This document shows, one piece after another, positions 19,846 to 61,600 of a DNA stretch of 64,000 bases (positions within the stretch are counted from its first letter, which is position 1; every line of letters begins with the position of its first letter). The position numbers were made by a program, and so were the translations under genes. Source of the stretch: Bispira polyomma (taxonomy: Eukaryota); NCBI GenBank assembly GCA_965649765.1, contig OZ287749.1:21142001-21206000 (forward strand), given 5' to 3'. Below the pieces are notes generated by a model. It had not been told where the DNA came from, searched no databases, and saw only the letters and a program-made list of their open reading frames with translations.

Positions 19846-20096
19846 TTGAATTGAATTTGAATATTTTACGTCCACTCTAGTACCTGTTTAGGTTATATTG
19901 GGACGGGCAGTTGGAAACGCTGGAGGAAACACTGCATACAGTTGATCAAGGTTCTGCACTGAAACCAGCGGCCTACAGTGAGGAACTACCACCTTTCCCA
20001 CATAGGTATCAGGGATTCGAACTCCTGCCACCCAGAGGTGAGAGACCAGTGATTGTGAAGCGCAATGCTTGCTAACCACTAGACCACCGCGGCCCC
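19846..20096 (-). mobile_element. Full-length tRNA-derived SINE with 13-bp TSD
   Basis: A box TGGTCTAGTGG, B box GTTCGAATCC, (TTCAA)n tail; TSD ctaatgtcaaaca at 19833-19845 and 20097-20109; highly similar to 42521-42779. Confidence 0.92.
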
Positions 20097-35060: not shown

Positions 35061-36929
35061 GAGTGACTACTGCTGCCTCCTTATACCCCGTTCACACTGT
35101 CCGCGTTCTCTAACAAGTTGGACAAACTTCTGAGAACTGGGCAAAAATGAGTGTAGAACTTGGGCAAACTTGGGTGAACGACAAAGTCGAGAGCTCCACC
35201 TAGAAATTTTTGACATGTTCAAAACTTTTTTTTATTGTTTTATGATTTTACATATATCTAATTTATACACCTATACCTTTATACATCAAATTTTACAACG
35301 AGTCAAAATAATATATAGAAAACCCCTAGCGTGTGCGTGCATGTGTCAAGACCGAGTTATTCTATTTTCAGTATAGACTATATAAACAATACAGAAGTAA
35401 TAAATCACTATGCCTAAACATATAAATGTTCTAAGTGTGCCGGAAACCAGTGGGGAAAAACCATCAATTTGTAGACAATGTTCTCGACAATTCCGGGGAT
35501 GAGATGAATAATTCTTATAGTGAAAGTGAACACTCGTCAGTGAAATCAGTGAATATGAAAATCTTAGAAGAATTAAAGGAATTGGGAGGACGAATGTCAA
35601 AAATAGAGCAAAAAGTGAACTATGGTGACACGTTAGGGACTTCGGCTTCGCAGTATGATACTACTAAACCCGCTTCCACATCAAAGTCGACTGCGGAAGA
35701 CGACCTGGTGATCCCTTCCCTGGCAGTATTGAGACGCTCACAAACAGTCCAGTACCAGGTAGATGACAGACTAAAGGAGCTGGCCCTGCTAAATGAGTCG
35801 GGTAGGTTCAAATCCCAAAGAGGGGGTTAGAAACTGTTTATGTTAAGAAACAGATTCCATGGCCTCAAAGTTATGTGTTAGGGGGAAGCAACAAAGGTAG
35901 GGTCAGTTATGATCAGCTTTCAATGGCACAGTGGATAGCTGGATTTAGCGCTATAATACCCAAAGAATCTGATGTGGTTCTCAAAAATCACATGTTAGAT
36001 TACCTGAATGATATAATGGAGGACAGCCATGACTTCTCTTGGTCTGCCGCCAGGGAAGCTCATGCTGTCCTCTTGTGTAGAATGGAAGATGGCAAAGTAA
36101 CATGGGGCGACACACACCAGATTGGAAGAATCAGAAGGGCACATGCCCAAAAGGTATCTCAAAATGTAGGGGGTAGTTCAATTAAAAAATTTGGCAGAGA
36201 AAAAACTACGGCAATCCCGTGTAGATTCTATCAAAAAGGTTCGTGCTCTCACAAGTCAGACCATGAATGAGGGGGTCAGTTGTATTCTCATGTGTGTGTG
36301 ACATGTGCTGGTTATGGCAAACAGCACACAAATCCGGCAAAAGACTATAAGAAAACTTCAAACCAAAACTCAAATTCAAAAAACGATTAGGGCACTGCCA
36401 AGGGGCAGTGCACAAAAGATCAGAAAAAATCAAATATGATGACGCCTTGGAGGTAAAGAAATTTAATACTAGAATATGTGTAAATAGTGAAATGTGTGAA
36501 AGGGCGAGCATGAATTTGAGACACGTCTGGAAGAAAGTAAATCAAATGTCATATGCACAAGTGGTGCAGGAAGGGAATAAAAAGGAAATCAATAACAAAA
36601 ACGAAAAAGTGGAAACAGTCCCCAAAATCAGCTTGTGCTTTCACAAAATGTCAAATAATGCTCATGTAAAAAGCAAATGGTCCAAAAACACCAACAAATG
36701 CATGTTTACAGGAAATGTAAAACACAAATTGTATAAAAACACTAACTAATGTATGTTTACAGGGAATGTCAGGAAATGTCACCCACCAATAAGGGTGAAT
36801 GCTGGCCCAATTGTTTCCAAATGGGTAAAAGGCAACAATAAGGTGGTTATTTCCCCCCTCCCCAGAAAGGTGGTTTCAAAAAACACTCAGCTCGGGGTGA
36901 ACAAATTAAAAATAACACTTTAAGTGGCA

Positions 36930-37375
36930 CACACAACAGGTTTTCCCCCCTAGAACAATTTAAATGTGAAGAAACCATAGTGATGGGAAACTAAGGGGAA
37001 ATAGTAAATGATCCCACTGCGGAACCCCATAAGGGTCACAACATGCCTAATCCAAAACGAACAGATAACTCAAAGAACTAACATAACAGGTTTGTGCCCC
37101 TAGAACAATTTCAGTTTAAAGAAACCATAGTGACGGGTAACCAAGGGGAAACATTAGATGATCCCACTGCGGAACCCCATAAGGGTCACAACATGACTAA
37201 TACAAAACAAACGGGTAACTCAAAGAACCAACACAACAGGTTTCCCCCCTAGAACAATTTCAATGTGAAGAAACCATAATGATAGGTAACCAAGGGGAAA
37301 TAGTAAATTATCCCACTGCGGAACCCCATAGGGGTCCTAACATGTCTAATACAAAACAGATGGGTGACTCAAAAA
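36930..37375 (+). repeat. Three ~150-bp tandem repeats in the pre-RT region of element 3
   Basis: Units begin acacaacaggttt..cccctagaacaattt at ~36930, 37081 and 37231. Confidence 0.85.
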
Positions 37376-40300
37376 ATGAGGTTATTTACACTGCTAAAAC
37401 CAAAGTTAAACTCATGGGATGAGGTGAACTTAACTTAAAAGGGGATAGCAACAGTAATATAAACACTGAGGATAAATATGAGTTCCAATTACAGGTGAAG
37501 CCAAACCACAAGGATCTTATCCGTACAGCAGTAGATAATGCCACCTTCAGGGAATGGTATGACCAAAGCGCTGACAAATTTGGGTTTGTTCCCCTGGGGG
37601 ATTTGAAAATACCAACATGAGACAGGAAAAATAAAAGTAGTGCATCTATGTGCAAACTACATGAGATTATAACAGATGATAAACAGCATAACTTTTGTGG
37701 CTCTCACATACAAATAGAATCTGAATTAAAACCGGACAAATGGGCAGAATTGCTAGGTGACTATTGGGATAAACAACTCCCCTATCCTAATAGGCTTTCT
37801 TTTGACTTTGATTCTGCAAAATTTTACACTAAAGATGTTGAAGCATATTTAGAACAAGAAAAGCAGTTCAAAGCTATACTAGGTCCATTGAGGAAACCTC
37901 CAAAAAACTTACATATATCACCCTTCATGACCAGGGAGAAGCCTGGGGGTGCACATAGAAGAGTTATAATTGATCTCAGCTTTCCTTTAGGTGAATCTGT
38001 CAATGTAGGGGTTCTAAGAAATAGCTACCTAGGCACGCCCTTCATGCTTACCTTACCTACTACAGATGATGTCACAAATAAAGTTAGATGCTTAGCCAAA
38101 AGGCTCCCTTTTGTACAAAATTGATGTCAGCCGGGCATTTCGGCATGTCAAAATGGACCCTAAAGACTATGACCTTTTAGGTTTAAAACTCGACGACTAT
38201 AATGTGGACATGTGCCTGCCCTTTGGGTTCAGGCATGGAAGTGCAATATTCCAACGCCTAAGTGATGCTGTCCGCTTTGTTATGTCTAAAAAGGCTTCAA
38301 AGTCACGAATTACATTGATGATGTCATCGGGTACGGTACGCCCAGTACGGCAGAAAAGTCGTTCAAAATGCTCCATAAATTTTTAGTAAATTTGGCTTTT
38401 GCAATTAGCCAGAAAAAACTTATTAGGCCAGCTACTAGTGTCTGGGTGTACTAATAAACACAGATAATTTCACTGTTTCAATTCTACCGGAAAAACTCAA
38501 TGACGTCAAAAATGTATGCCTAAAGTGGCATAAAAAAACACACTGTTCAAAATGAGATCTCCAATCATTACTGGGCAGCCTACTATAAGTATCCAAGTGT
38601 GTTAAAGTTTCACGCTTTTTTCTAAACAGAATGCTTGATGTACTTCGCTCGGCACATGATGACAGGTCCATACAATTAACAACTGAATTCAAACAAGACC
38701 TTGCATGGTTCAGTAAATTGATTTCACAATTCAATGGTGTTGCTTTCTTCGACCAGAGAATCCTCAAAATAGGTATAGAGCTAGATGCATGCTTGCAAGG
38801 TCTGGGTGGGCGATGGGGTAATCCACAGTCATTAGGGGCTGATTTCGTAGCTGGCAGTATCACACAACTACCCACGGCCTACTGTATATATAATAAAGAC
38901 AAGTTTGGCAACTCGTTTTGTGGGCGAAAATAGGCTCACTTTCTATAACTACAATTTCTCAATAAAACCATTCTTATTGATAAATTTGAAAAGTATTATT
39001 CATACTATCAACTTACTGTTACATTTATGCACAAGTATTGCTAATCCATTAAATATCCAGTAATATGTAACAATTTTGCTGAAAAACTTGTGAAATCTAA
39101 CATCTTCTGCATGACGTCATTTACCAAATTGACAGAAATACGGAAAATACTCTATATACAGTAGGGTCCAAGAAATTTTGGAATCAGTCATTTATTTTAT
39201 GTTGAGAATTGATTAAAATGCAAAGTAATGTCAAAATGAATTCTAAGTAGATAAATTGCATTTGTAAATTAAATTTAATTGAAATTAAGTAAAAAGTATT
39301 AACAATGCTAATCTATGAAGATTAATGAGTCAATTTTTGTCTGCACTATTATCAACCCCAAATAATACAGGACACAACAAAACAAGTTATATTATAGCAC
39401 TTTCTTTATTTCAAACATCATAGATACTTAATTCTGATGTATGCTAACCTAAATTCCAACATCAGTTTACTGAAAGTGTCATGCTTGGTTATAGTAGGCT
39501 AGTATAGTATAGAATTTTTGAAAGGGGGAAATTCCTTTGTTCTTTTTATTGTAAAATTTCACTAGAGATTTTTTTAAGACACAATGTCAATGACTTAATT
39601 TTTATTACAATCATGTTGATACACTATTGTGAAATAAATGCCAGGATAATTATTACTACAGAATAGTCAATGCAATACATTGGTCAACCTAAAGAGGGAT
39701 GATTTTTTAAAACAACAATAAAAGTTATGTAGAGCACTATTGTGCAATGAATCAGAAATAATTTTGGAAGTAATGGATTGCATCAAATAAGGTGAATTTA
39801 TTTTGTGTAAAATTTAGAGGGGAGCAAAAAAATCTAACCACTTTAGGACTGCCATCTCACATTGTGTTAACCTATGTACCTTAAGCATTGTTTTTTGTTT
39901 ATCAATTTATTAAAGTCTGATACTCTTTGCTTTTTCTTCTACATTTTTTTTCCTGCCAGGCTTATTTTTGGGTTTTAGAAATCTGTAAGGCAATGTAGCA
40001 CCACAGCCACCAGTATTAGATTTCTTTGAGACTGTAGTCTCTGTGAGAATAATAGCATTAGTGCTGGTGCCATAAGATGCATAAGTGGGGTCAGTAGAAA
40101 GACCATTTCTTACACCTGTGTTGACAAAAAATATTTTCAATAGGGTCCGAATTTATTCTTGCAGGAACTAAAACAGAGTGACCCCGAGAACTGGTTATTT
40201 TATGAACGGAAATAACTCCCTCCAGAAATGATAAAATGTCTTCCATACACTCCCTGGTAAGCTTGTGTTTGGCCTGAGGTATCTCATTCCAGGTTTGGAA

Positions 40301-41254
40301 AAAAGTTAGAAGCTCATGAATTACTGACAATCTCTTATCAGACACCACATTCAGTGGGCGCTTATCCGAAGCAAATTTCACTAATTTTGATGTATACTCT
40401 AGTAACGGAATCGTACCACTGAGACAGGTTTTAGTTTTTTCTTGGTATTTTCTCATAAGATACAACATTTCTTCATCCAAAACATCTTCAGCTAGTTGGT
40501 TACGCATTTTGGTTGGCCCAGTTAACTCAAAATGATCGTTGGATAACTTTCTGTGAATTTTTAACGGTTGCTTTTCATTAAATTCATGGGCATCTAAGAA
40601 ATGTTGCCATTTGACCGATTGACCATTAACTGTCAAGTCTCGCTTGTCACCATCACTCTTTTCAAGACTGTTACAGATTTTTTTAGGCCATGCTTTATGT
40701 CCATAATGAAAACAATTGACTTATTGGGATTCACAGGATTAACCGCAGTGAAATGACTTTCCAACATATCTGAACTACACAGATTAAAGTGTGTCCTAAA
40801 CAATTGTCTATTTGCTACTGCACCATCTGTGCTAAGATAATCAACAGTGAACCCATATTCCTGTAATTTGTCAATGCCACGCCATAGTAAGAAAAACAAA
40901 TGGTGTGCCTGTGCACATGATACAGGGTAATGGGCAATTGGAAACCTAAAACCAGTATGTCCTAAAAAAAACAAACTGAAGCACATTTTTGGCAAGATCA
41001 AATGTAGTGGTTGGGTTAGTAACTGTATTTGCCAAGTTTCCTAGCTTTCCTAAATCAATGTTCCCAACTAAAACCATTGATTTCCCCCTTTTTACAATTT
41101 GAAGAATTTGTTGAATTGACATTTCGTCAATCAGCAATCCACCATACCATCCCTCTGGTGCTAAATTATGTCGGAGTGCCTCATTCCGCATCCATCGCAA
41201 GATATCATTCTAAAATAAAAGATATTAAACATGATCTCTGCACAATTTGCCTAA

Positions 41255-41560
41255 AGTGAAATAGGACATTTGTTATAGCACACTTACACAACACAGAGTT
41301 GTCTCAAATAAGCTTGCTCATGGGCAGCCACTATAGGTGCTGAGGCTTGCTTGAGGATGACCATTTATCAACGTCCCCCAAGGATCTTTAAGCTGCCACT
41401 GTAGATATTACTCCATGACAGAGGACCGCCATTTTAAGTGGTCATCCGAGCCACTGGGAAAACTTGTGTTCACATCTTGCCCAAGGATGTTATCCCACCA
41501 AATGAAACTAGCGGCTGGTACTAGGAATAGAACCGGGGACCTTCTGATCATTAGACCGTC
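41255..41560 (-). mobile_element. Nin/Deu-domain-like SINE in the transposase intron
   Basis: Minus strand gtggctcggatgaccacttaaaatggcggtcc...ttaaagatcc resembles the Nin/Deu domain; B-box-like ggttctattcc upstream. Confidence 0.55.
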
Positions 41561-42520
41561 CCAGAACATTGAATAAAATAAATGTAACAAATATCATTAC
41601 CATTACATATACAGTACACTAACTTCTCAATTAATAATTGACTGAATAGAGTATATATTACAAAAGACCTAATCTTACCCCTTGAACAGTTCATTATATG
41701 GATGATCTAGGATTCAATCATATTTTTGCAGCTAAACATCTATAAACGCTAATATTATGAAATTAACCAAAGAGTGGATGCAATATCCCTTTCTTATTAA
41801 ATTACATGCATACATTAATATTAGCTTATTTAAAGAAAAGTTGCATGCCTGAAACCCTGGATCTTGATTGGCGCAGTTCTTATAATACCGCATTAGTCGT
41901 CCACTTGGCAAATGAATAAGTCCGCCATCACGAAGCTCATCATAGGCTTTTGGGGAACGACAATATAGGGCTAATGCTGTGGCAATTACTTTTGAATCTC
42001 AACGCCTTCCAGTGGATGGGCAATTCAGATTTTGCAGTTGATCAGCAAACATAGTTCTTAAATCTACTGGTAAGTCCATCTTTAGTAATTGCTGACAAAT
42101 TGTTTCATGATCGGATGATTCATCTGGCCCAAGTTCTATGATTTCTGGCTCTTGTGATGTTTCACAAGATTGGTGTGTGGCTACTGAGTTATTAATACTT
42201 GTTTAATAGGTACTGTGGAAGGTTCATCTTTTACAGAGCATTTAGGATGCATCCTACTGCAAGGATCACAAATAGGGTTATTTTTGTGGATTGGGATTGC
42301 ATATGTACAATGGGAGCTTCGGATACTAATTTCGGGCATGAAATTTTCATCATTTACTTTTGTGATTGTTTGCCATGCAGTATTGGGGAAATATTTGTTT
42401 ACATTAGTTTCATCGCTAACAACTTCCCCAAACAAACACGCAAGCTTTTTGCAATTTTAATAATCGACTTAACACACTCATTTGTCCAGTCATTTCTGTT
42501 GGATATACCAACTGCAAGAG

Positions 42521-42779
42521 AGGGGCCGCAGTGGCCTAGTGGTTAGCAAGCATTGCGCTTCACAATCACTGGTCTCTCACCTCTGGGTGGCGTGAGTTCG
42601 AATCCCGTCGATGCCTATGTGGGAAAGGTGGTAGTTCCTTACTGTGGGCCGCTGGTTTCTCTGCAGAACCTTGACCGACTGTATGCAGTGTTTCCTCCAG
42701 CGTTTCCAACTACCCGTCCCAATATAACCTACGAAAAGGTACTAGAGTGGACGTTAAATATCCAAATTCAAATTCAAAT
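42521..42779 (+). mobile_element. Full-length tRNA-derived SINE with 13-bp TSD, inserted in a transposase exon
   Basis: A and B boxes, (TTCAAA)n tail; TSD ccaactgcaagag at 42508-42520 and 42780-42792. Confidence 0.92.
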
Positions 42780-43309
42780 CCAACTGCAAGAGGGTTAATT
42801 TGCCATTGACAAATTGAAAGATCCCACTTATTGTTCTCAATGGTAATTTGTTTGAGTATTGCATTTCCATTGCTTAAAACATCTGATGGAATGTTAAAGG
42901 ACAAAAATTTATCTCCTCTGTTGGACACAGGGCAAAAATCTGGCAAGATAAAAGTTTGTGCATTTACTACATTATTATTACTTGGCTTCCACTCTAAAGG
43001 GAAAATAGGCTCTACACTCTCTGTTCTTGGATTTCTCTTGGTTTTGGTAGTTTTGAAGCCAAACATAAGACGTACTGTTTTACTCAATGTTACAACAGGA
43101 CATGGTGATAGCCCAACAGACTCAGTTTCTGTTATGTAAGAATTGTATATGTCACTCAGAAAAATGATACTGTTAGCAGCAGTTGAAATATCCAAGTGTG
43201 ATAATATCCTGAAAGTAAGGCAAAAATGTTTGGCTTAAAATGCTAAAGTTAGAATTAAAAGGCTATCACATTTCATTTCAGCTGGAATAAACTATACTCT
43301 AGTTATTTG

Positions 43310-43432
43310 CAGGGGAGTAGCTAGGATTTTTCATTTGGTACTTACTCCCCAATTTATCAAAATATTTGAGAAATATTTTGTTAGTTTTTGTGCTAACATA
43401 AATTCTTGGGTAGTGGTAGTGGTGGTGGTGGT

Positions 43433-43467
<35 letters not shown>

Positions 43468-43556
43468 TCATTATTTTTTTGAATTTTAATATATTTTTTT
43501 CTGTTATTAAATTGGTACGCCTGGGCATACTGGATTCTACACTAGCTACGCCCCTG
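43310..43556. mobile_element. Small MITE with internal (GT)n
   Basis: 15-bp TIRs caggggagtagctag / ctagctacgcccctg (one mismatch); no clear TSD. Confidence 0.65.
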
Positions 43557-43896
43557 TTTTGTGTGGCCCACATTGATGATGCTGAATAAATATATGGATA
43601 AATACATAGATAAGTAAGATAGAAAGTAATTTTGTTAACAGATAAGTAAGGTAGACCCTGCAGGCATGTATCAGGTAATTTCTATGAGAAAAGGCCTGGT
43701 GCAATTTTGTAAATTTGTTCTTATTTTTATGGTTTGAAAAGGCACATCTCAAAGTTACTTGGATATTGTTATATTTAAATCGCCAAATAGAACTGATGCA
43801 AAGCTTTATTGGATATTTTGGTGAACATAGGCAAACAAAGTGGCATCTACAACAAACCTGAATAGAGGATATATTAGTGCATAAAAACTTTACAAT

Positions 43897-46800
43897 ATGA
43901 CTGGAAAGTTAAATGAAAAACAGTTGGAGGCTTATACCATCGCCACTGCAGGGCACAACTTATTTTTAAGTGGTCAAGCAGGTAAGTACAGCAATAAGTT
44001 CATTAAACTTTGAATTTTAATTAGAGACTATTATTATCTGATATTTAAAAAATGATATATATACCTACTATGAATTAAAAATATTTTAAAGATTCCTAAA
44101 AAATAAAAATCAGATATTATAATTGTAGTATGAATTAATAAAATTTTGAATATTCTGAAAATTAAAAAAATTAATGTCCATAGATTAGTGAAGGGGTCAG
44201 TAACGTAAACACAAAAACGATTGCTGCTAGATCACATTATGACAGAAATACCATCTTCAGTCACAGACAACTTTGTTAGGAAGGCCTGATAGTCAATAAA
44301 TTAGCATTTTTACTTATGATGAGTGAAATAATTAAAGGAGGAATTAATTACCAATTCAAGTTCAATTTTATGTATTTCATAAAAACAGTTTAGCAGCAAC
44401 AAATATTACATATAGGAAGTCGTAAAATAGTAACCAAAATATGAATATTTCTCTAAGTACACTCTTCCCAAACATGATAAAATACACATATAAAGGAGAA
44501 ATCCATAGTACAATGTTGTATACCAGAGGATAAAAAAAGACTTCAGCATTATTTTGTATGATTTACTTTTTCAATAAAATTCAATAAACTCTGCTAATTT
44601 TCGGAAATACACAAAGTTAATATATCACAAATTTAACATTGAGTTGTATTCATGTTTTCCAAAAGGTATAAAAACATATTTAAAAAAATAAATCATACAA
44701 AATAATATATATGTTTCCTAAAGTTGTGTAGTGTATACCAGTTCCTAGGAAGATCAAAGCAGTATATATTTTGACATCTTGAACGAGTTCATTAATATCA
44801 AAGCAAGGTGATTAAAGAGATCACCAATATAAACTGTAGTTGGGTAAGTCCTGAGTATAAATAAAAGACCTATTTACTCCCTGGATATACTAATCCATTT
44901 AAAGCAATACCTTTTTTTAAGTAAGGATTAACAATATAGATATGGTTAAAGAATGTAATCAAACTGACTTTACACGAAAAATTACATTATTAAATTTTAT
45001 CTACATTCCATGACCTGGACTGTTGAATGTACACTCTCCACAATATACTCATTGAATCTATACATTCCATGGATGTCAGCTATTGAATGTACACATTCAA
45101 TGACTAGCCTGTGGAATGTACACATTCAACAGTTATCTACTTTCAATACAACATATATAAGTATATAATGTGTATATACATGCTGGATTAATACTGAAGA
45201 TTCCTAAAAATTTAAATTTTTTTTAAATAGATACTGGTAAAACATGGCTGCAAACGAAAATTATGCAAGATTTAGCAAACACAAATAATACCAACGTAGT
45301 TGTCACCTGTGCAACTGGAATTGCAACACAAAATTTCCCGCCAGGAAAAGCCACAACCCTTCACAAATGGAGTGGAATTCAAGATGGGAGATATACCACA
45401 AATGAGCTGAAACGGTTCATTATGGAAAGCGAGGCATTTTCTTCTGTTAAACAAAGAATAATGGACACAAATGTACTGATCATCGATGAAATATCAATGA
45501 TCAGTAAGAAAATGTTTGAGCAAATAGAAGAAGTCTGCAGGTAGGTCTCTTTGAAGAGGTTTTAGTAATCGTTCCAATAAGGTGTTCTTTACAAAAGGTG
45601 AAACAAAATGTATGTGGTCATACACAAGAACAGAAGCCGTTTATTGGGGCTATTAATGCAATATTTTCTGAGATTGCTGAGTTTTAGGCACCTACATTGA
45701 AGATACATGTGTATTAGTTGGGCACTTTCAAGGCGTGTATGAGATACCATGACGAATAGTCTAGTGGTTGAAAAAATGGAAAATGGTAGTTGATTAAGGT
45801 TTTCTGATATGCTTACCACTGGCCTTAATAAAATCTATTTAACTTTCCATCAAACACATTGGCATTCAGATTAGCAACCACATCGACAGAGTTGTGAGCT
45901 CATTGTGCTACCACTGAGACCACCTTCAATCACTAATCAAATTTAGCACTAAGGTTTTGCTTTCAGCTTTAGGTTTATTCGAGGTTCAAAGTTCCCATTT
46001 GGTGGAATTCAGATATTGGCTAGCGGCTCATTTCGACAACTAGCACCTGTGAGAAATACTTTTTATGGTGATGAAGGAGACTATTGCTTCCACAGTAATA
46101 TTTTTCCTCGTGTATTTGCCCATTGTGTTACATTAACAGATGTCATTAGACAAGACGAGCCATTGTGTTACATTAACAGATGTCATTAGACAAGACGAGC
46201 CAGCTCTAATAGAGAAAATTGCAGAAACAGAGAAAGGAATTTTGACAGACAAGTCCATTCGGTTTATAAAGAGTTTAAACAGACCATTACAAGTACCAGA
46301 TAACGATATTGTTAATCTATTTGCGCTAAAATTAGATTGCTTCATGCATAACAACGAAATGCTAGACAAATTGAACACTGAATCCAAATGTTTTAGATCC
46401 AAAGATACGAGATTCGGAGCTGGTGTGAAACAGTCGCACATTGAGCAGAACATTGGCCTTGAAAAAGTAGTACTCCTAAAAGTAGGAGTTCCAGTTATTT
46501 TAACATTTAATGTAAATCTTTCCAAAGGCCTTGTCAATGGACAAAGGGGATTTGTTGTGGGATTTAACGACAATGCGGTGACAGTGGATTTTGGTTAACC
46601 TGGTTTAACAGACGTTGAGATAGCACCATTCACATCTACCACAAATAACCCCATTAGCAAAAGCATGTTGTTTCAAAGAGTGCAAATACCACTTCACCTA
46701 GCCTGGGCTATTTACCATTCGCGACGCACAGGGTATGTCCATAAGAAATGTGTGCATCGATTGCTCCGGTTTTTTTTTTACCGGACCAATTTGCAGTTGC

Positions 46801-48828
46801 TATAGGCCGTGCAATTTCCAGTAAAGGAGCGTGTGTCATAAATTTTAAACCATACCATGTCATAAAACATCCTGACTGTGTAGACACATTTTATTCGCAC
46901 CAGGAATTTCAACCTGCACTTGAAAACGCACTATGCTGCCAGTCAAATTTGAACGACCAAATTCAAGATGCTATAGAGGTAGCTTTGGAAAGAGTGATAC
47001 CTGAAGCGAAAACAGCCCCTGATGTGGATGATGATCTGTTGCAGGATTTTGGTGCAAAGATCGCAGGCACAGATGAAATACCAATACTCCCACTTAAACA
47101 GGATATACTTGATTTTGAACATCTCACTGAACTCACACTGACTCAACAAGACATTCTAAACCCTTGTAGATTTCATACGGGTATGGCTGAATTATTATCA
47201 AATTTTAGTGATTTATAAATAAATGCACTTCAAATCATTTAAATTGTTTATCTCTGTCACTTTGTTAAATATTCAAATGAAGTGTTTTTTTTTCAGGCCA
47301 AAGTGATTCCCAATCCTAAAACTAAAGATTGGACGATGTTTTGTTCCCAAATTTACCAATTTCTTACTTCTGGAGGTCTCTATTCAACAGAGAAATGCAT
47401 ACTCTTTAAAACTACAGCGCCATCAGAGATTCAGCATCAGCTCTCCTTTAAAATTTACCAAGCAGCATGTGAGGCAGTTATGGAGTCCATGGTGCAACAA
47501 AAACCACAAGGTTCAACAGAAGAGTTAGATATAGACAAATCCATGACCAAATATGATGATATAGCCCTGTCAAAAATTAGGTATATTGGCGGTGCATGCA
47601 TAGTGGCTATTAGGAAAAGGTCAGTGGCAGAAAAAATATTGCTTTGTGTTGGGTAATGTTTTGTCCTAGTAATATCTACAAATTGTGCCAAGTCCCAAAA
47701 AGGCCATCAGAAATGCCAAACTTCTGTCCACTCAATGTTTCTGAAATGAATGCCCCCCTCTCATAACTAACTTAATGTCCATATTAGGGAAGCTATACAT
47801 ATGACAAACCCTTGTTTCAAATTTGGTGAAGTTCTTGGTAATTCTTTTTTTTAAATGATAATAGAATAATTTACTTCATATTTTAAAAGGCTAAGCTTTT
47901 TGTGTATTTCCCATTTTCAAAACAAAGCGACATTGGTTATATTTAGTTTCAATGCATATATTTGGCAGAAGAAATTTTAAATTATCCCCATATATAATAT
48001 ATATTTTTAACTTCAAGATTGCAAAGACGAAATCATTCCAAGCCTGCTACGTTTCCTCATCTGGAAACTTCTAAGAGTTCTTCAGATAGAAAGAAGTGTC
48101 ATTTCAGAGTTTAGTGAATTTAAAGAGTCATTAGAAGAGACAGAAAGAAAGCAAAATGAAATTCCAGGATTGACACATATCACTGATGACTATTTTCAAT
48201 TTTTTGTCAGTCTTTTTGACCTTGTGGCATCATATGAAACAGTTGACAACATACACGGACATGGAAGTCGTCTTTTTGATGTTGTTTGTAGTCAGGTTCT
48301 GTCAAACTCACAGATGTTAGATAAGTGGTGTCCCTTGTTTTTCGCATTCCAGTCATCTGCTGATGCAGATGATATTGAAGTGGCCATGATGGAACTGTTC
48401 GAAGATGTTATTTTGCAGTTTGTACGAATTAACCACTCAAACCTTCGAAATACTTTTAAAGAACAACATGTGAAAAAACCAAAGCTTTGAGGAAAGCCTT
48501 AGCAGCACCAACAGAAGCATCAACTTCATCTTTAAAGAGGACTAAACCCTTAAATGAAAATGACAGTTCAGGCAGTGAAAAAGAGGAACAGGAATTTGTG
48601 TGTCCCATGTGCCAACAGGAATGCATAAATGATCCACCTAGTTTTGAAGATCAAAGCATTGAGTACCATAACTGCCATAAATGGCTTCATTATAAATGTT
48701 GTTCGATAAAGGGAACAGAGAGGTTCTTAAAGTCAGAGTATATGATCTGGATATGTTCAATTTGTAAATCCCTAAAAACTAATACTGGAAAAGGCAAGGG
48801 CAGAGGGAAAAAAAGCAAAAAACATTGA
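43897..48828 (+). pseudogene. PIF1-family SF1B helicase with C-terminal PHD finger; spliced (exons 43897-43981, 45231-45541, 45973-~47180, ~47297-47650, ~48018-48828), disrupted
   Basis: LNEKQ..A...GHNLFLSGQA|DTGKT, CATGIA, TLHKWSGI, LIIDEISMIS, PFGGIQILASGSFRQLAPV, IRQDEP, LKVGVPVILTFN..GLVNGQRG, QIPLHLAWA, QFAVAIGRA; CPMC..HNCHKWLHYKC..WICSIC; basic tail KGKGRGKKSKKH. Confidence 0.88.
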
Positions 48829-49688
48829 ATTTTAAACTAATACATACATTTTTGTGCACTACATTGTACTAACTTAGATAAATAACAATAATTTTCATCT
48901 CTTTGAATATTGCTTAAAGAAATATTTCTGTTATAATAAGAAAAATAACAAAATCACTTTAATTGATTCGTATCAGATTTACAGATGCATATGAGTAAGC
49001 AATGGACTTGTTCTACGTTTATTATTTAAAAACAGTACATGTGATAATATATAATAAAGTATATACTAGATATTTGGGTGCCAAACTTTTTGGAGCACAG
49101 TGTACATCACAGACGTACATTTTATTGTGTTAATCAAATCACACTTTTATGCAGAAAAATATTTCACAATCATTAATGTAAAACAATCTACGTATATTTA
49201 CCAGAATGGTAGTTCTTTAGCTGAATTCATAATGATATTTAGACATGTATATTATGAAGTTTATAATTTTATTTGCAAATAATCTGTTTCAAATTTAAAT
49301 GACGGTAATTCTGATCAATCACAGCACATTTGGTTGCTGACGTCATGCAGAGGAGAATCCACAACTTCCTGGAAGAGACAATTTGGATACATGTTTGTGT
49401 TTTGACTAAAAATTTTATACTTTGGAACAGGATTGGTGTATTACTTATCAGGTAAGTTAATTGTATGATTATTCAGCAGTGTTTTGGTGTTTTTCTTTTA
49501 ATTTTTGGGTGTAGATAAGTGAAGAAATTGTAATTATAGAAAGTGACCCTATTTTTGTCCACAAAACGAGTTGCCAAACTTGTCTTTATTATATATACAG
49601 TAGGCCGTGGGTACTTGTGTGATACTGCCAGCTACGAAATCGGCCCCTAGCGACTGTGGGTAATCAGGTGTACACACTTCAACTTCCT

Positions 49689-50106
49689 TTCTTATTTTAG
49701 CCCCCATCTATCCAAATATACATGCTCAGTCAGGACTAGGCGCAGTAACCCTGATAAATTATACCTTAACATTCCCACTTTCGACCCTCGCATCCACAAA
49801 TCCAAAGTTCAGTTCAATCACTGCCTAGCTCATGATGGCCCCCTCATTTGGAACAGCCTACCTGATCATGTTCGCCTGGCTCAAACTTTCTCCTCTTTCA
49901 GGAGTAAGCTGAAGACCTATCTTTTTGAACAGGCTTTTCCATCTTAGCCGTCGCAACCATCTACGGTAGTCTCCCTGGTTACGACTTCCATCCGCCCACT
50001 ATTTTTGATTTGCGATTAACGTTTTGGGTTTGTTGCGCCTTAGAATTTGTTGTACAAAGATTAAGCGCTATAAAAGTACGACTAGATTAGATTAGATTAG
50101 ATTAGA
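49689..50106 (+). mobile_element. 5'-truncated L2/CR1-type LINE 3' end
   Basis: GPLIWNSLPDHVRLAQTFSSFRSKLKTYLFEQAF*; (ATTAG)n tail; candidate ttcct TSD at 49684-49688 and 50107-50111. Confidence 0.8.
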
Positions 50107-50471
50107 TTCCTCTACGCTTTCAAAATTACGCTATTGTTCACTTGGGGATGATCAATATTCTCAGCTATCCGGTTATGGGGGTTGCCATTAGACAGAAAAT
50201 AAAATTGTGGTATTGTGCGACAATCAGGCGGTAGTCTCGGTACTTACCAATGGCAAAACTAGGGATCTTACTCTGACAGCCATGGCTCGAAACATCCAGA
50301 TGGAAGCTGCCAGGGCAGATATTGACCAACGAGTAGTACATGTCTTAGGTAAAAGTAATGAGGTAGCAGACTTGCTATCTAGTTGGGCAATAACCAGTGA
50401 ATCTTCAAACAGATTAAGGAAATTTATAGTAGAACCAATATGGTTACCTGTAGGGGTGGAAGCCACCCATC

Positions 50472-51427
50472 TTGACTGCTGGCAGAGCAGCTGGAAGGGC
50501 TCATACAGCCTTCAGACCCTCCACTCAAAAATCTTATAACTTTATGTTCAGAAACTTCCTAGCTTACTGTGTGTTTGCAAATATTGCAATACAACCAATC
50601 ACGGCTACCATTCACTTATCTTTTCTGGAGGTTTTGGCTAAAAACAACACCTCTCACTCTGGTATAGCAAATTATTTGGCTGCAATCAAGGCAAGGTTAG
50701 CCCTATATGGCCTTGCCACCTCAGCCTTCATGGACACTAGAATAAAGTATTTCCAAAAGGCAATTGCATTGCATAAACCCTTTAAAGTACAACTTAAATT
50801 CATCATTGACATTCCTCTGCTGATCCAAATCATCAAAAAATGTGACTTTATATACATGGGTCAGATCTACAAGGCCATCTACCTCTTTGTATTTTTCTCA
50901 TTCATGAGAATATCAAATTTGGTTCCCCACTCTAACTCTACTTACTCACCCCTACAACACCTAGCCAGAGGTGACATCATATTTGCACCTCCTGGCCTTC
51001 AAGTATTGATTAAATGGAGTAAGACATTACAGAGCAGGGATACAGTTAGACTTTCAAAAATACCCTCACTTAGGGGTTCCCCACTGTGTCCAGTGGCTGC
51101 CATTTCCAATATGCTTGCCATCACTCCTGGTCAAAAAAACTCACCTCTGTTTCAATGTAAAAGCTTGGCCATGTGGCTCCCTATGACTGACACTAAATCG
51201 GGCGTAACTTCGCTATCATTCTTAAAGACCTTGGTTTGCAAAAATTTAACATCACTTTTCATTCTTTTAGACGTACTGGAGCCATGTTGGCCTTTAACAA
51301 CAATGTTTCCAATCAAAATATTCAAAGTCATGGCACTTGGACCTCAGAATGCGTCTGGCGCTACATTACACAAGACCATGACTCCTCTGACCAGATGGCG
51401 TTGGCCTTTCAAAATTCACTACATTAA
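50472..51427 (+). pseudogene. Tyrosine recombinase of element 3, frameshift near 51200
   Basis: FMRISN, KWSKT and LCPV in ORF 50472; HSFRRTGA, HGTW and WRY in ORF 51236. Confidence 0.88.
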
Positions 51428-52605
51428 CCTTCCTCTTGTACCTCCTAGTTGGGGTTTTTAGTTCAGGCAATAATCTTAAATGGCATTTATATACACTATA
51501 TATTAGTCAATACTTAAGGCCACCTTAACTTTACGTAACTTAAACTGTAATCTTAAATGAAGTAATAAGATTCGTAACTATACGTAACTTTAATTTAATG
51601 TAATCTTAAATGAAGTTAAGTCAACATCTTAAACTCAGGCAAGGACTTAAACTCATGCTCTTAACTTCAACATTAATTTAAGGTGGTCTTCATCTTTTAG
51701 TTAATGATATTACAATTTGTACATAATCTGTATATCTAACTTGAGTGAATTAAACTAATATGCCCAAAGAATGGTGTTTTAATTATATATTAATTCATAA
51801 ATCCACACTTTGGGGAAGCACTGTGTATGGTGAGGCCGGGGACTCAGCAGGGTCAGTGCTGCCAAAATATTGCTAAAACTATTCTTCTTCAGTCTCTAAT
51901 TGGCCACACTGGGGTCATGGCCCCAGCTATGGGGTCATAACCCCAGCCATTCCCATTCTTTTCATATAATCCTCATTATAAATTTGTTTACCAAGAAGGC
52001 AATACGCCAATTTTAAATATAAAAGTTTCCCTCCCACCACACCCTTATCATGGTATTATATTATATAATTGTACTGACCAACTATTGTATATGTACGTGT
52101 TATATAGACAAATAAATGTGTATTGTATGTGTACATTATGGCATGCATAGGTTTCAACAAAACCACAGGCTGTAAATAGTGTTCTGTAGTTTCAGGAGAA
52201 GATCACAGAGTACAAGGCAAGCATCATAAAGTATGTTCAAGTGCTGTCACTAGAAACAAGAATCATACCAACTCGATTCGTGTGATGTATTCTTGGCTAG
52301 TTGGATCTACTCTGCAATGGAATGCCCGACTCCTGTGATAAGGGGCTACGTAGTAGTCATTTTAAGGCATAGCTAGATAGGGAGCAGACAGTTGCACGTA
52401 AGAGACTTTTCATGGACTGTGTTGTCTGTATGTGAGTGTATGTGTAGTCTTTTAGCTAGTGGGTTATTATGTTTTACTCTATAGTGTTTTTAGTTCAGAC
52501 AATGAACTTAAATGGTATTTTTATACACTATATATTAGTCAATACTTAAGTCCACCTTAACTTTACGTAACTTAAACTGTAATGTAATCTTAAATGAAGT
52601 AATAA

Positions 52606-58682: not shown

Positions 58683-61600
58683 ATTAATAATATAATAGTT
58701 TATTTTCGTACTCACAGTACATCGTAACTACATAAATGACAAACAGACAATAAAACAGATTAACTAATTATAACAGCACAGTAAGTATGTATAGAAAAGA
58801 GGTGGTAACTTAAATGTACAATTCTATTCATAATTGATCCTCACATAGATATTTTAGCATAAAATTTATTTCATACCTTGTAAATCTTGTAGTGTTGTTA
58901 TCCCTTAGATACAGTAAGTCTTTAATATTTTCTATAATATGACATTCATTTGCCTCATTCATACCATTTCTACAGGTCTTAAAAATCTGGTTACTGTAAG
59001 TCTCAACAAGTTTATCTTTACCAATATTGACCATTTTTGACATACTATTTATATTATTGCTAACATTAGAACTATTCCCTGACAAAGCCAGCTTAGCACA
59101 AGTAGAGATGACATAGTTAGTACTAGAAATACAACTCTGAAAAAACTTTAAAAATCTCTTATACATCTGCATGTACAACTCTTGGTCATCACATATGGAA
59201 CTAACGTACCTGTTGTGGGTACGTGGAGGTAATCTCCATATTAGCCTGACAGACTTCCTCCAGGCTATTGTGAAATCCTTGAATTCTTTACTATTATAAT
59301 CCCACAAAACACATCCATATAGTGACATACAATATGTTTTGAACAATTTAAACCTGACAAATGAATGGGCCGTAGAGAATATAGATTTTCTACAGTTTGT
59401 TGCTACAGTAAATTTATCCTTAGCGACTTTAACCATTTCATTTTTATTCTCAGACCTAATTTGCAACCCTAAATGAGAAACACTTCTAACAGCTTTAATA
59501 AATATACCATAGTGAGTTATACCAGATATATCATCTCTGATACTACTTTTACTGAACACCACCAGTTGATATTTGTCTGGATTAAACTTGATATCAAAAT
59601 CTGCACCAAATTGGTCACATATCTGTAACTTTATTTCAATACAAGAAACCGTTGGACATAGTAAAATTATATCATCTGCATATCCAAAACTACCCATGTA
59701 CTCATTGCCAATATGACACCCCACACCACTTTTCTTTAATCTCATATACAATTTATCAATGTACAATGAAAACAAAATAGGAGACATAACGCCTCCCTGT
59801 TTAACTCCATTTGAGATTTTAAAATATTTCGAGAAATAACTTCCCCATTTAACATTTATCATTTGACACAAATACATATTCATCATCAATTTTGTAACTT
59901 TAGGACAAAGACCTTTATTAACCAACACCTTAAAAAGTTTTCCATATTGCACACGATCAAATGCTTTACTTGCATCTAATAACATTAAGTACATATTTCT
60001 ACTTTTGTTCATATAATACTGAGTAATTTCATTAATGACAAATGAACATTTTGCTGTAGAATGTTGTGACTTGAAGCCAAACTGATATCTACTTGACTCA
60101 AAGACATGCTTAATCAGTTTTAACAGAACTAAATCAAATAGTTTACCAAAAACACTGCTAAGAGCAATAGCTCTATAATTAGTAGAATTATTCAAAGACT
60201 TTCTCTTATCCTTTGGGATAGGAATAAGTGTTGATTTTAACAATTCTGAAGGTATAACAGTGTTTTAACATTGCACAAAATGCTAATGATATGTAGACAT
60301 ATAGTCTGTGCGTCCCATATTTGATATTATTGGTACAATACCTGTGATCACTATCATATTTTCCTAATTTAAGTTTTTTACTTTCACTTATGATATCTTG
60401 TACAGATATATTATGATCTGAGTAACACTTTCCTGATCACATATATGTCCAATGTTCTCATCAACTATATTTTCTACATTTTTCATTTTACTTTTATCAT
60501 ATAATACGCTGTTGTATAGTGATTTATACTTATTTTCAAATAATTCACAAATATTTTTCAAACCATTGACACCATCAATATTACATGCCACACTACTTTT
60601 ATCACTACATTTAGCCTTTTTTATATTCTTCCAGAAATATTTAGAGTCATTAACAATTAAAGCATCTGCCATTTTATTAGCCCTAATAACATCTTAATTT
60701 TTTTTCACATGTCTGATACCGTAGTGATATTGTGCTCTGGTTTTAACCCGCAAATCAGCAATGATACCATCATGTGGACATTCATTTTCCTTCCATATGT
60801 TATGCCATAATAATGCTTGTTTTCTAAGTTTATTAATATTTTCATACCAGCCTGGAATGCCTTTAAACCTTTTCTTAGCTTTTGGAAAACACTTTTCACT
60901 TGCTGCAACACATGCATTTAATATCTTATTATAGAAAACTATGTCAGAAGATACATCTGTCTGACCGTTACTGTTATTATATAGTAAATTGACAGGTATT
61001 TCAATAACTGACAGCCTCAGATCTAGTTCTGTTTTATAATTATTAATATGAATACAATTTGCTTTATCCCATCTTGCTACTGATGGGGGTGTATTGACCT
61101 CTTCACTAATATCATTGTATAGGACTGGCAAGTCTAATTGTAACACAATGGGAGAGTGGTCAGACATGTTATCTACTTCATGTAATGACATACACATTCT
61201 GACAGAACAATTGAGATTTTTACTAACCATAAAGTGATCAATGATAGACTTGGCATAATTGATTTTACTTTCATAAGTATAGTCAACATCACAACATTGT
61301 AAACTTGTGCAACATTCAAGGCTTTCATTCATCATAAATGTTTTTAATACATGTGTTACTTCTTTGGTAGAGTTATTTGTAAGACTAGCATTAAAATCAC
61401 CACCCAGAATAATAAAAGTACTTTCATTTGTAGAGCATATTGCTGATACTTCGCACAGTACATCACAATATTCCTTTAAATCATTTATTTTCATATATGT
61501 ATTAATTAACAAAACAGATTGTAGCCTAATTTTGAATTTAACAGCACACAATCATTTACTGACTGAGAGTATTGGAGTAACATTTAAATTGATGTTATTC

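Follow-up and report, generated by a model that had tools for sequence, protein, structure and literature searches.

The 64-kb stretch of Bispira polyomma DNA analysed here (the window) contains a DNA transposon that carries two genes, a P-type transposase and a Pif1-family helicase. The longest inverted repeat in the window is formed by the two terminal inverted repeats (TIRs) of this element (Table 1), which are 94% complementary and give it the ends CACAG..CTGTG. The transposase on the minus strand and the helicase on the plus strand lie head to head. Excising the element in silico rejoins the interrupted frame of a decayed retroelement (LDACLQGLGGRW-GNQVY). The original prediction, made from the letters of the window, had claimed both the TIRs and this restored frame, and both stand. 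Because the two genes contain frameshifts and stops, and a 272-bp repeat is inserted into the transposase, the window copy is a dead element, as had also been claimed; it is the most diverged of the 15 family copies that were aligned.

The transposase of an intact sister copy exceeds the Pfam cut-offs for PF21787 and PF21788, and its best fold matches are 6P5A and 6PE2, which bears out the prediction of a P-type enzyme. The motifs DEM, DG..N, DxxH and D..EN.F align across elements, the Capitella and Porites sequences being partial, and the D, D, C/DxxH and E residues are present. With an RNase H DDE core, a GTP-binding insertion, these catalytic residues and TIRs with an 8-bp target-site duplication (TSD), the element, as read from its sequence, behaves as a P element by core, motif and TSD. 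The C-terminal helical domain (CTD) of canonical P and THAP9 enzymes was looked for on the transposase chains and is absent; the last exon stops about 75 amino acids past the catalytic E, without a CTD. A first exon was looked for and not found, and the models consist of two exons, with a 6-nt uncertainty at the donor site of the middle exon. With the first exon missing from the model, no THAP match was seen in this transposase or in 10 longer homologs; a weak RFX-like match was seen.

The second gene encodes a protein of 918 amino acids in five exons. The helicase domain begins at its N-terminus and a PHD finger lies near its end, as had been predicted. It has motifs I-VI and the 2B domain of a Pif1 (superfamily 1B, SF1B) helicase, with Walker A, Walker B and motifs III-VI retained; motif III is GSF in this family, whereas most relatives have GDF. 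In sequence comparison the helicase matches human PIF1 (E 7e-30) far better than it does the Helitron Helraiser (E 1.5e-5). Pfam scans of the element open reading frames, the helicase protein and 9 homologs gave no match to a HUH Rep, which the original prediction had likewise not seen.

The long C-terminal region that had been noted on the helicase is present. The first reading had not seen that it contains a domain which, in modelled structure, looks like the CTD of P transposases, the domain missing from the element's own transposase. When this helical domain was compared by fold with 48,161 entries, the P CTD protein ranked first, with the full target domain covered and the next match 3 Z below. 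The top match was the single protein predicted beforehand, and the CTD-like fold on gene 2 complements the truncation of gene 1 exactly. A hidden Markov model of the CTD region matched 47309-47623 (E 4e-15). At the sequence level, searches of PDB sequences, Pfam, ESM Atlas features, Foldseek and Atlas shapes gave no sign of a link to the CTD. A search for an unsplit ancestor recovered just two Mytilus PIF1-PHD proteins, a weak result as the word search was saturated. In many helicase partners (P0058, P0068, P0072, P0081, P0113) the CTD-like domain and the PHD are separated by a further short helical module, which looks SAP-like by eye and which this family lacks; P0341 has a homeodomain-like match at its C-terminal end in place of the PHD.

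Table 1. Features of the two-gene element and its insertion site, in window positions.
Feature	Position	Strand	Remarks
Left target-site duplication	38816..38823		GGGTAATC, 8 bp
Left terminal inverted repeat	38824..38959	+	136 bp; begins CACAG
Transposase last exon	39910..41209	-	RNase H fold with D-D-E, DxxH motif, GTP-binding insertion; frameshifted in window copy
Transposase middle exon	41850..43208	-	weak RFX-like winged-helix candidate (RFX E 0.016), CxxC motif, P-type helix-turn-helix
SINE-like repeat inside transposase exon	42521..42779	+	window copy only; second copy at 19851-20096
Small insertion, upstream region of transposase	43310..43556		inverted ends CAGGGG..CCCCTG; from sequence; shared with family consensus
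Helicase exon 1	43897..43981	+	start codon to first half of Walker A
Helicase exon 2	45231..45540	+	second half of Walker A, Walker B; PF05970 E 5e-12
Helicase exon 3	45973..47180	+	motifs III-VI, 2B domain, linker; frameshift in window copy
Helicase exon 4	47297..47619	+	helical bundle, start of P-CTD-like domain (RYIGG motif)
Helicase exon 5	48018..48828	+	remainder of P-CTD-like domain to ~48478, PHD finger ~48601-48765, basic tail
Right terminal inverted repeat	49523..49658	-	136 bp; terminates CTGTG
Right target-site duplication	49659..49665		GGTAATC, 7 of 8 bp

A search of the genome with the TIR, one of the checks proposed with the prediction, gave at least 44 matches, which sort into 16 two-ended copies (5.2-11.5 kb), single-ended pieces and four miniature elements. 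Ten of the 16 two-ended copies are near full length with both genes, and six have internal deletions and lack the helicase core. Pairwise identity among the 15 aligned copies is 96-99%. An 8-bp TSD flanks 14 of the 16 (nine exact, five with one mismatch; two have a common TSD and may not be independent), one copy has 9 bp, and the window copy alone has 7 bp. The family therefore obeys the P rule and not the Galileo rule. The predicted 7-bp TSD is visible at the window copy and does not hold as a family trait, and the Galileo label is unsupported for this family. Since the left flank ends GGGTAATC and the right flank begins GGTAATC, the window duplication fits an 8-bp site that would have lost one G in the GTG-GGG junction run. 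The stretch was not found in any RNA run searched; DNA contigs place the family in two samples.

Two copies 2 Mb apart (L011-L014; C7:22.32 Mb, C7:20.29 Mb) have the same TSD and near flank and may be one insertion, later duplicated. The youngest-looking copy (C1:54437258-54448076; L017, L018), the one with the 9-bp TSD, has both known transposase exons open and a helicase frame that is open apart from a 4-bp loss near the 3' end. The miniature derivatives (L036-L039) are 271-336 bp long; because three have identical flanks, these appear to have multiplied within another repeat. More distant families in this genome, known by coordinates only, likewise place the two genes side by side, in tandem order in three sets and with the helicase upstream in one (G000 C2:81.48 Mb, C8:53.47 Mb, C4:47.33 Mb, C10:30.02 Mb; C3:102.22 Mb; C8:41.18 Mb; C5:25.81 Mb).

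In the local consensus both frames are open, the transposase over 796 codons in two exons and the helicase over 918 codons. Individual exons were used for searches, and joined consensus gene models for alignment, trees and mutation counts. Private mutations of single copies are neutral in the two genes (omega 0.86 and 1.05). Mutations common to several copies are poor in amino-acid changes (omega 0.51 and 0.55; helicase core 0.38; p ~0.03), which gives a modest signal that selection acted on the helicase at the time the family was mobile.

The pair is not confined to this genome. Six transposase homologs were followed to their loci (two ENA assemblies, Pecten maximus, Dreissena polymorpha, Capitella teleta and Porites lobata) and all six have a helicase alongside. 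Conversely, a transposase is present at two of three genomic loci of helicase homologs (Pecten and Glandiceps talaboti), the Mytilus locus having neither transposase nor TIR. The pair is known from molluscs, an annelid, a cnidarian and a hemichordate, in elements of 6.6-22 kb. Inverted repeats beginning CACAG were found at all eight paired loci, with TSDs of 8 bp at four (L042, L043, L044, L048), 7 bp at two and none seen at two; 7-bp duplications occur in single relatives from Porites (coral) and Glandiceps (acorn worm). Four gene arrangements are found: divergent as here, tandem, convergent, and transposase nested in a helicase intron. The nested transposase lies on the opposite strand in the Pecten element (L048, 9134-25114) and also in L052, L055 and L058. 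The Porites relative (L050, 4470-26705) is foldback-like, its 4.1-kb TIRs taking in the start of the helicase gene. Among 80 metagenome loci, 19 extend at least 2 kb downstream, and in 16 of these, some of them near-duplicates, the partner is present; each time it forms its own gene on the opposite strand.

Across nine elements, sequence identity between transposases tracks that between helicases (Mantel p 0.007), and the two trees recover the same four sister pairs. In quick trees that leave out Helitron and named animal host Pif1 sequences, the helicases group in a single clade, separate from the Pif1 of fungi, choanoflagellates and bacteria (SH-aLRT 100 and 97). The pair is thus shown to be old, widespread and long co-inherited. 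The two-gene P lineage with a Pif1-PHD partner, raised as a possibility in the original prediction, is supported by other copies and other animals, which carry the helicase too; this co-occurrence had been set beforehand as the check. The alternative named at that time, a nested Helitron fragment or one-off capture, is rejected on the paired loci, the helicase similarity, the co-divergence and the metagenome loci. A domesticated host gene was considered for Mytilus VDI39104 (L047), around which 41 kb contain neither a transposase nor a matching TIR; since the CTD-like domain is absent too, the protein looks more like a leftover of an element that became joined to other exons.

Features of the P superfamily include GTP dependence and a 17-nt staggered cleavage of the ends. 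TIRs of Drosophila P and THAP9 elements are 13-31 bp long and the P rule for the TSD is 8 bp (PMC7776569); the TIRs of this lineage, in contrast, range from 56 bp to 4.1 kb. Compared with Drosophila P and THAP9 (structures 6P5A and 6PE2), THAP was not found here and the transposase lacks the CTD, whereas a second gene encodes a CTD-like domain in fusion with Pif1 and PHD. Galileo has a 7-bp TSD and a one-gene layout. This Drosophila member of the superfamily resembles the present lineage in its long TIRs (PMC3573991), and single relatives in Porites, with its 4.1-kb TIRs, and Glandiceps share the 7-bp duplication. The family in Bispira differs from Galileo in its 8-bp TSD, its second gene and the lack of a THAP match; Galileo membership was rejected on the TSD counts (7 bp in just one of 16), and no Galileo sequence was among the matches of the searches made.

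DDE transposons that encode a helicase are known in AcademH and KolobokH, both from superfamilies other than P. The AcademH helicase is RecQ-like. That of KolobokH is a RecQ (PMC9587614), and the TSDs of AcademH are 9-10 bp (PMC10045372). Membership in either was rejected, the element having a P fold, an SF1B Pif1 helicase that carries a transposase domain, and a variable 8-bp TSD rather than TTAA or 9-10 bp. A Pif1-family helicase is shared with Helitrons, and Pif1 in transposons has been described as particular to them (PMC8788227). Helitron membership failed as well: there is no Rep match, TIRs, TSDs and a DDE transposase are present, and the helicase is nearer cellular PIF1 than Helraiser.

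These observations point to what is likely a P-superfamily lineage of cut-and-paste elements in which the transposase is split between two genes. Gene 1 would be the catalytic core (helix-turn-helix, RNase H domain with DDE, GTP-binding insertion) and gene 2 a Pif1 helicase fused to the transposase CTD, usually with a PHD finger. In the strand-transfer complex of Drosophila the CTD sits between the RNase H domain of one subunit and the GTP-binding domain of the other, contacts the single strand that loops out at the transposon end and extends toward the target DNA (PMC7776569). A transposase without a CTD should be incomplete. By analogy, the CTD of gene 2 may dock in trans where the Drosophila transposase has its own, and there is good reason to expect that the partner protein would supply the CTD in this way, thereby bringing Pif1 onto the transposon ends. 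The helicase is probably a built-in subunit of the transpososome. Pif1 enzymes are 5'-to-3' helicases and strip proteins off DNA. The helicase may unwind or remodel the cleaved ends, or it may take apart the strand-transfer complex, leading to gap filling; these two jobs are about equally probable. The PHD finger may bias the chromatin location of helicase action. The fullest form of the proposal, an undescribed old animal P lineage with a split transposase, in which the CTD carries an ATP-driven Pif1 into the transpososome as an obligatory subunit, has perhaps an even chance of being right. If true, an element-encoded helicase would perform a step, end remodelling or complex disassembly, that in Drosophila P is unexplained or falls to the host.

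The helicase could instead act outside the transpososome, with a transposase that works without a CTD and a CTD-like domain that merely recruits the Pif1 fusion to element DNA. The donor break would then be repaired by long-tract copying from the sister chromatid, giving higher copy number. Pif1 helicases aid repair synthesis and fork progression (PMC8998199), the elements are long, and co-inheritance and selection agree equally well with such an accessory role. It is nevertheless unlikely, since all transposases of the lineage must have dispensed with a CTD that contacts transposon and target DNA in Drosophila, and the same fold is retained in the neighbouring gene. The helical domain might also be no P CTD at all, only a common helical arrangement; Pif1-PHD would then be an unrelated accessory gene of a P element, as the original prediction proposed. 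This is very improbable given the first rank, full coverage and gap to the runner-up in the fold comparison, with a top protein that was predicted beforehand and is the exact complement of the truncation.

That the helicase is functionless cargo, a host Pif1 or Helitron fragment captured by one family, is barely credible and largely refuted. The six two-ended deletion derivatives without a helicase core still spread, as cargo would allow, but such derivatives can be mobilised in trans. Against it also stand the pair's presence in four animal groups and four arrangements, and helicases that form one clade, co-diverge with the transposases, keep their motifs and are far nearer human PIF1 than Helraiser.

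In the literature searched, mainly open articles with Repbase and Dfam outside it, neither a P element with Pif1 nor a split P transposase was found described, and the two-gene layout may already be catalogued. Helicases in DDE transposons have been described as RecQ-type accessories of unknown role (PMC8788227, PMC9587614). It is unclear how P ends reach their looped-out shape, and disassembly and target repair are uninvestigated (PMC7776569). Tying Pif1 to the P transposase through an apparent missing domain gives the pairing a concrete, testable reason. It would offer a natural two-component P system in which end shaping, disassembly and repair are separable by ATPase-dead and CTD-only variants. 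Many "PIF1-like" annotations in bivalves and other marine invertebrates would be transposon genes.

The retroelement into which the element inserted occupies 35400-38823 and 50190-51460 of the window, with gag-like, reverse transcriptase, RNase H and tyrosine-recombinase-like frames; it appears DIRS/Ngaro-like by motifs, Pfam matches being weak only. Sister copies hold the SINE-like repeat of Table 1 in helicase intron 2, not in the transposase exon. Helicase intron 1 has a 222-bp insertion with an internal inverted repeat (44909-45131), unique to the window copy. About 30 bp beyond the right TIR lies the inserted 3' end (~49690-50050) of a LINE-like repeat with a very high copy number, and a non-long-terminal-repeat retrotransposon with endonuclease and reverse transcriptase frames lies on the minus strand at 58828-61551.
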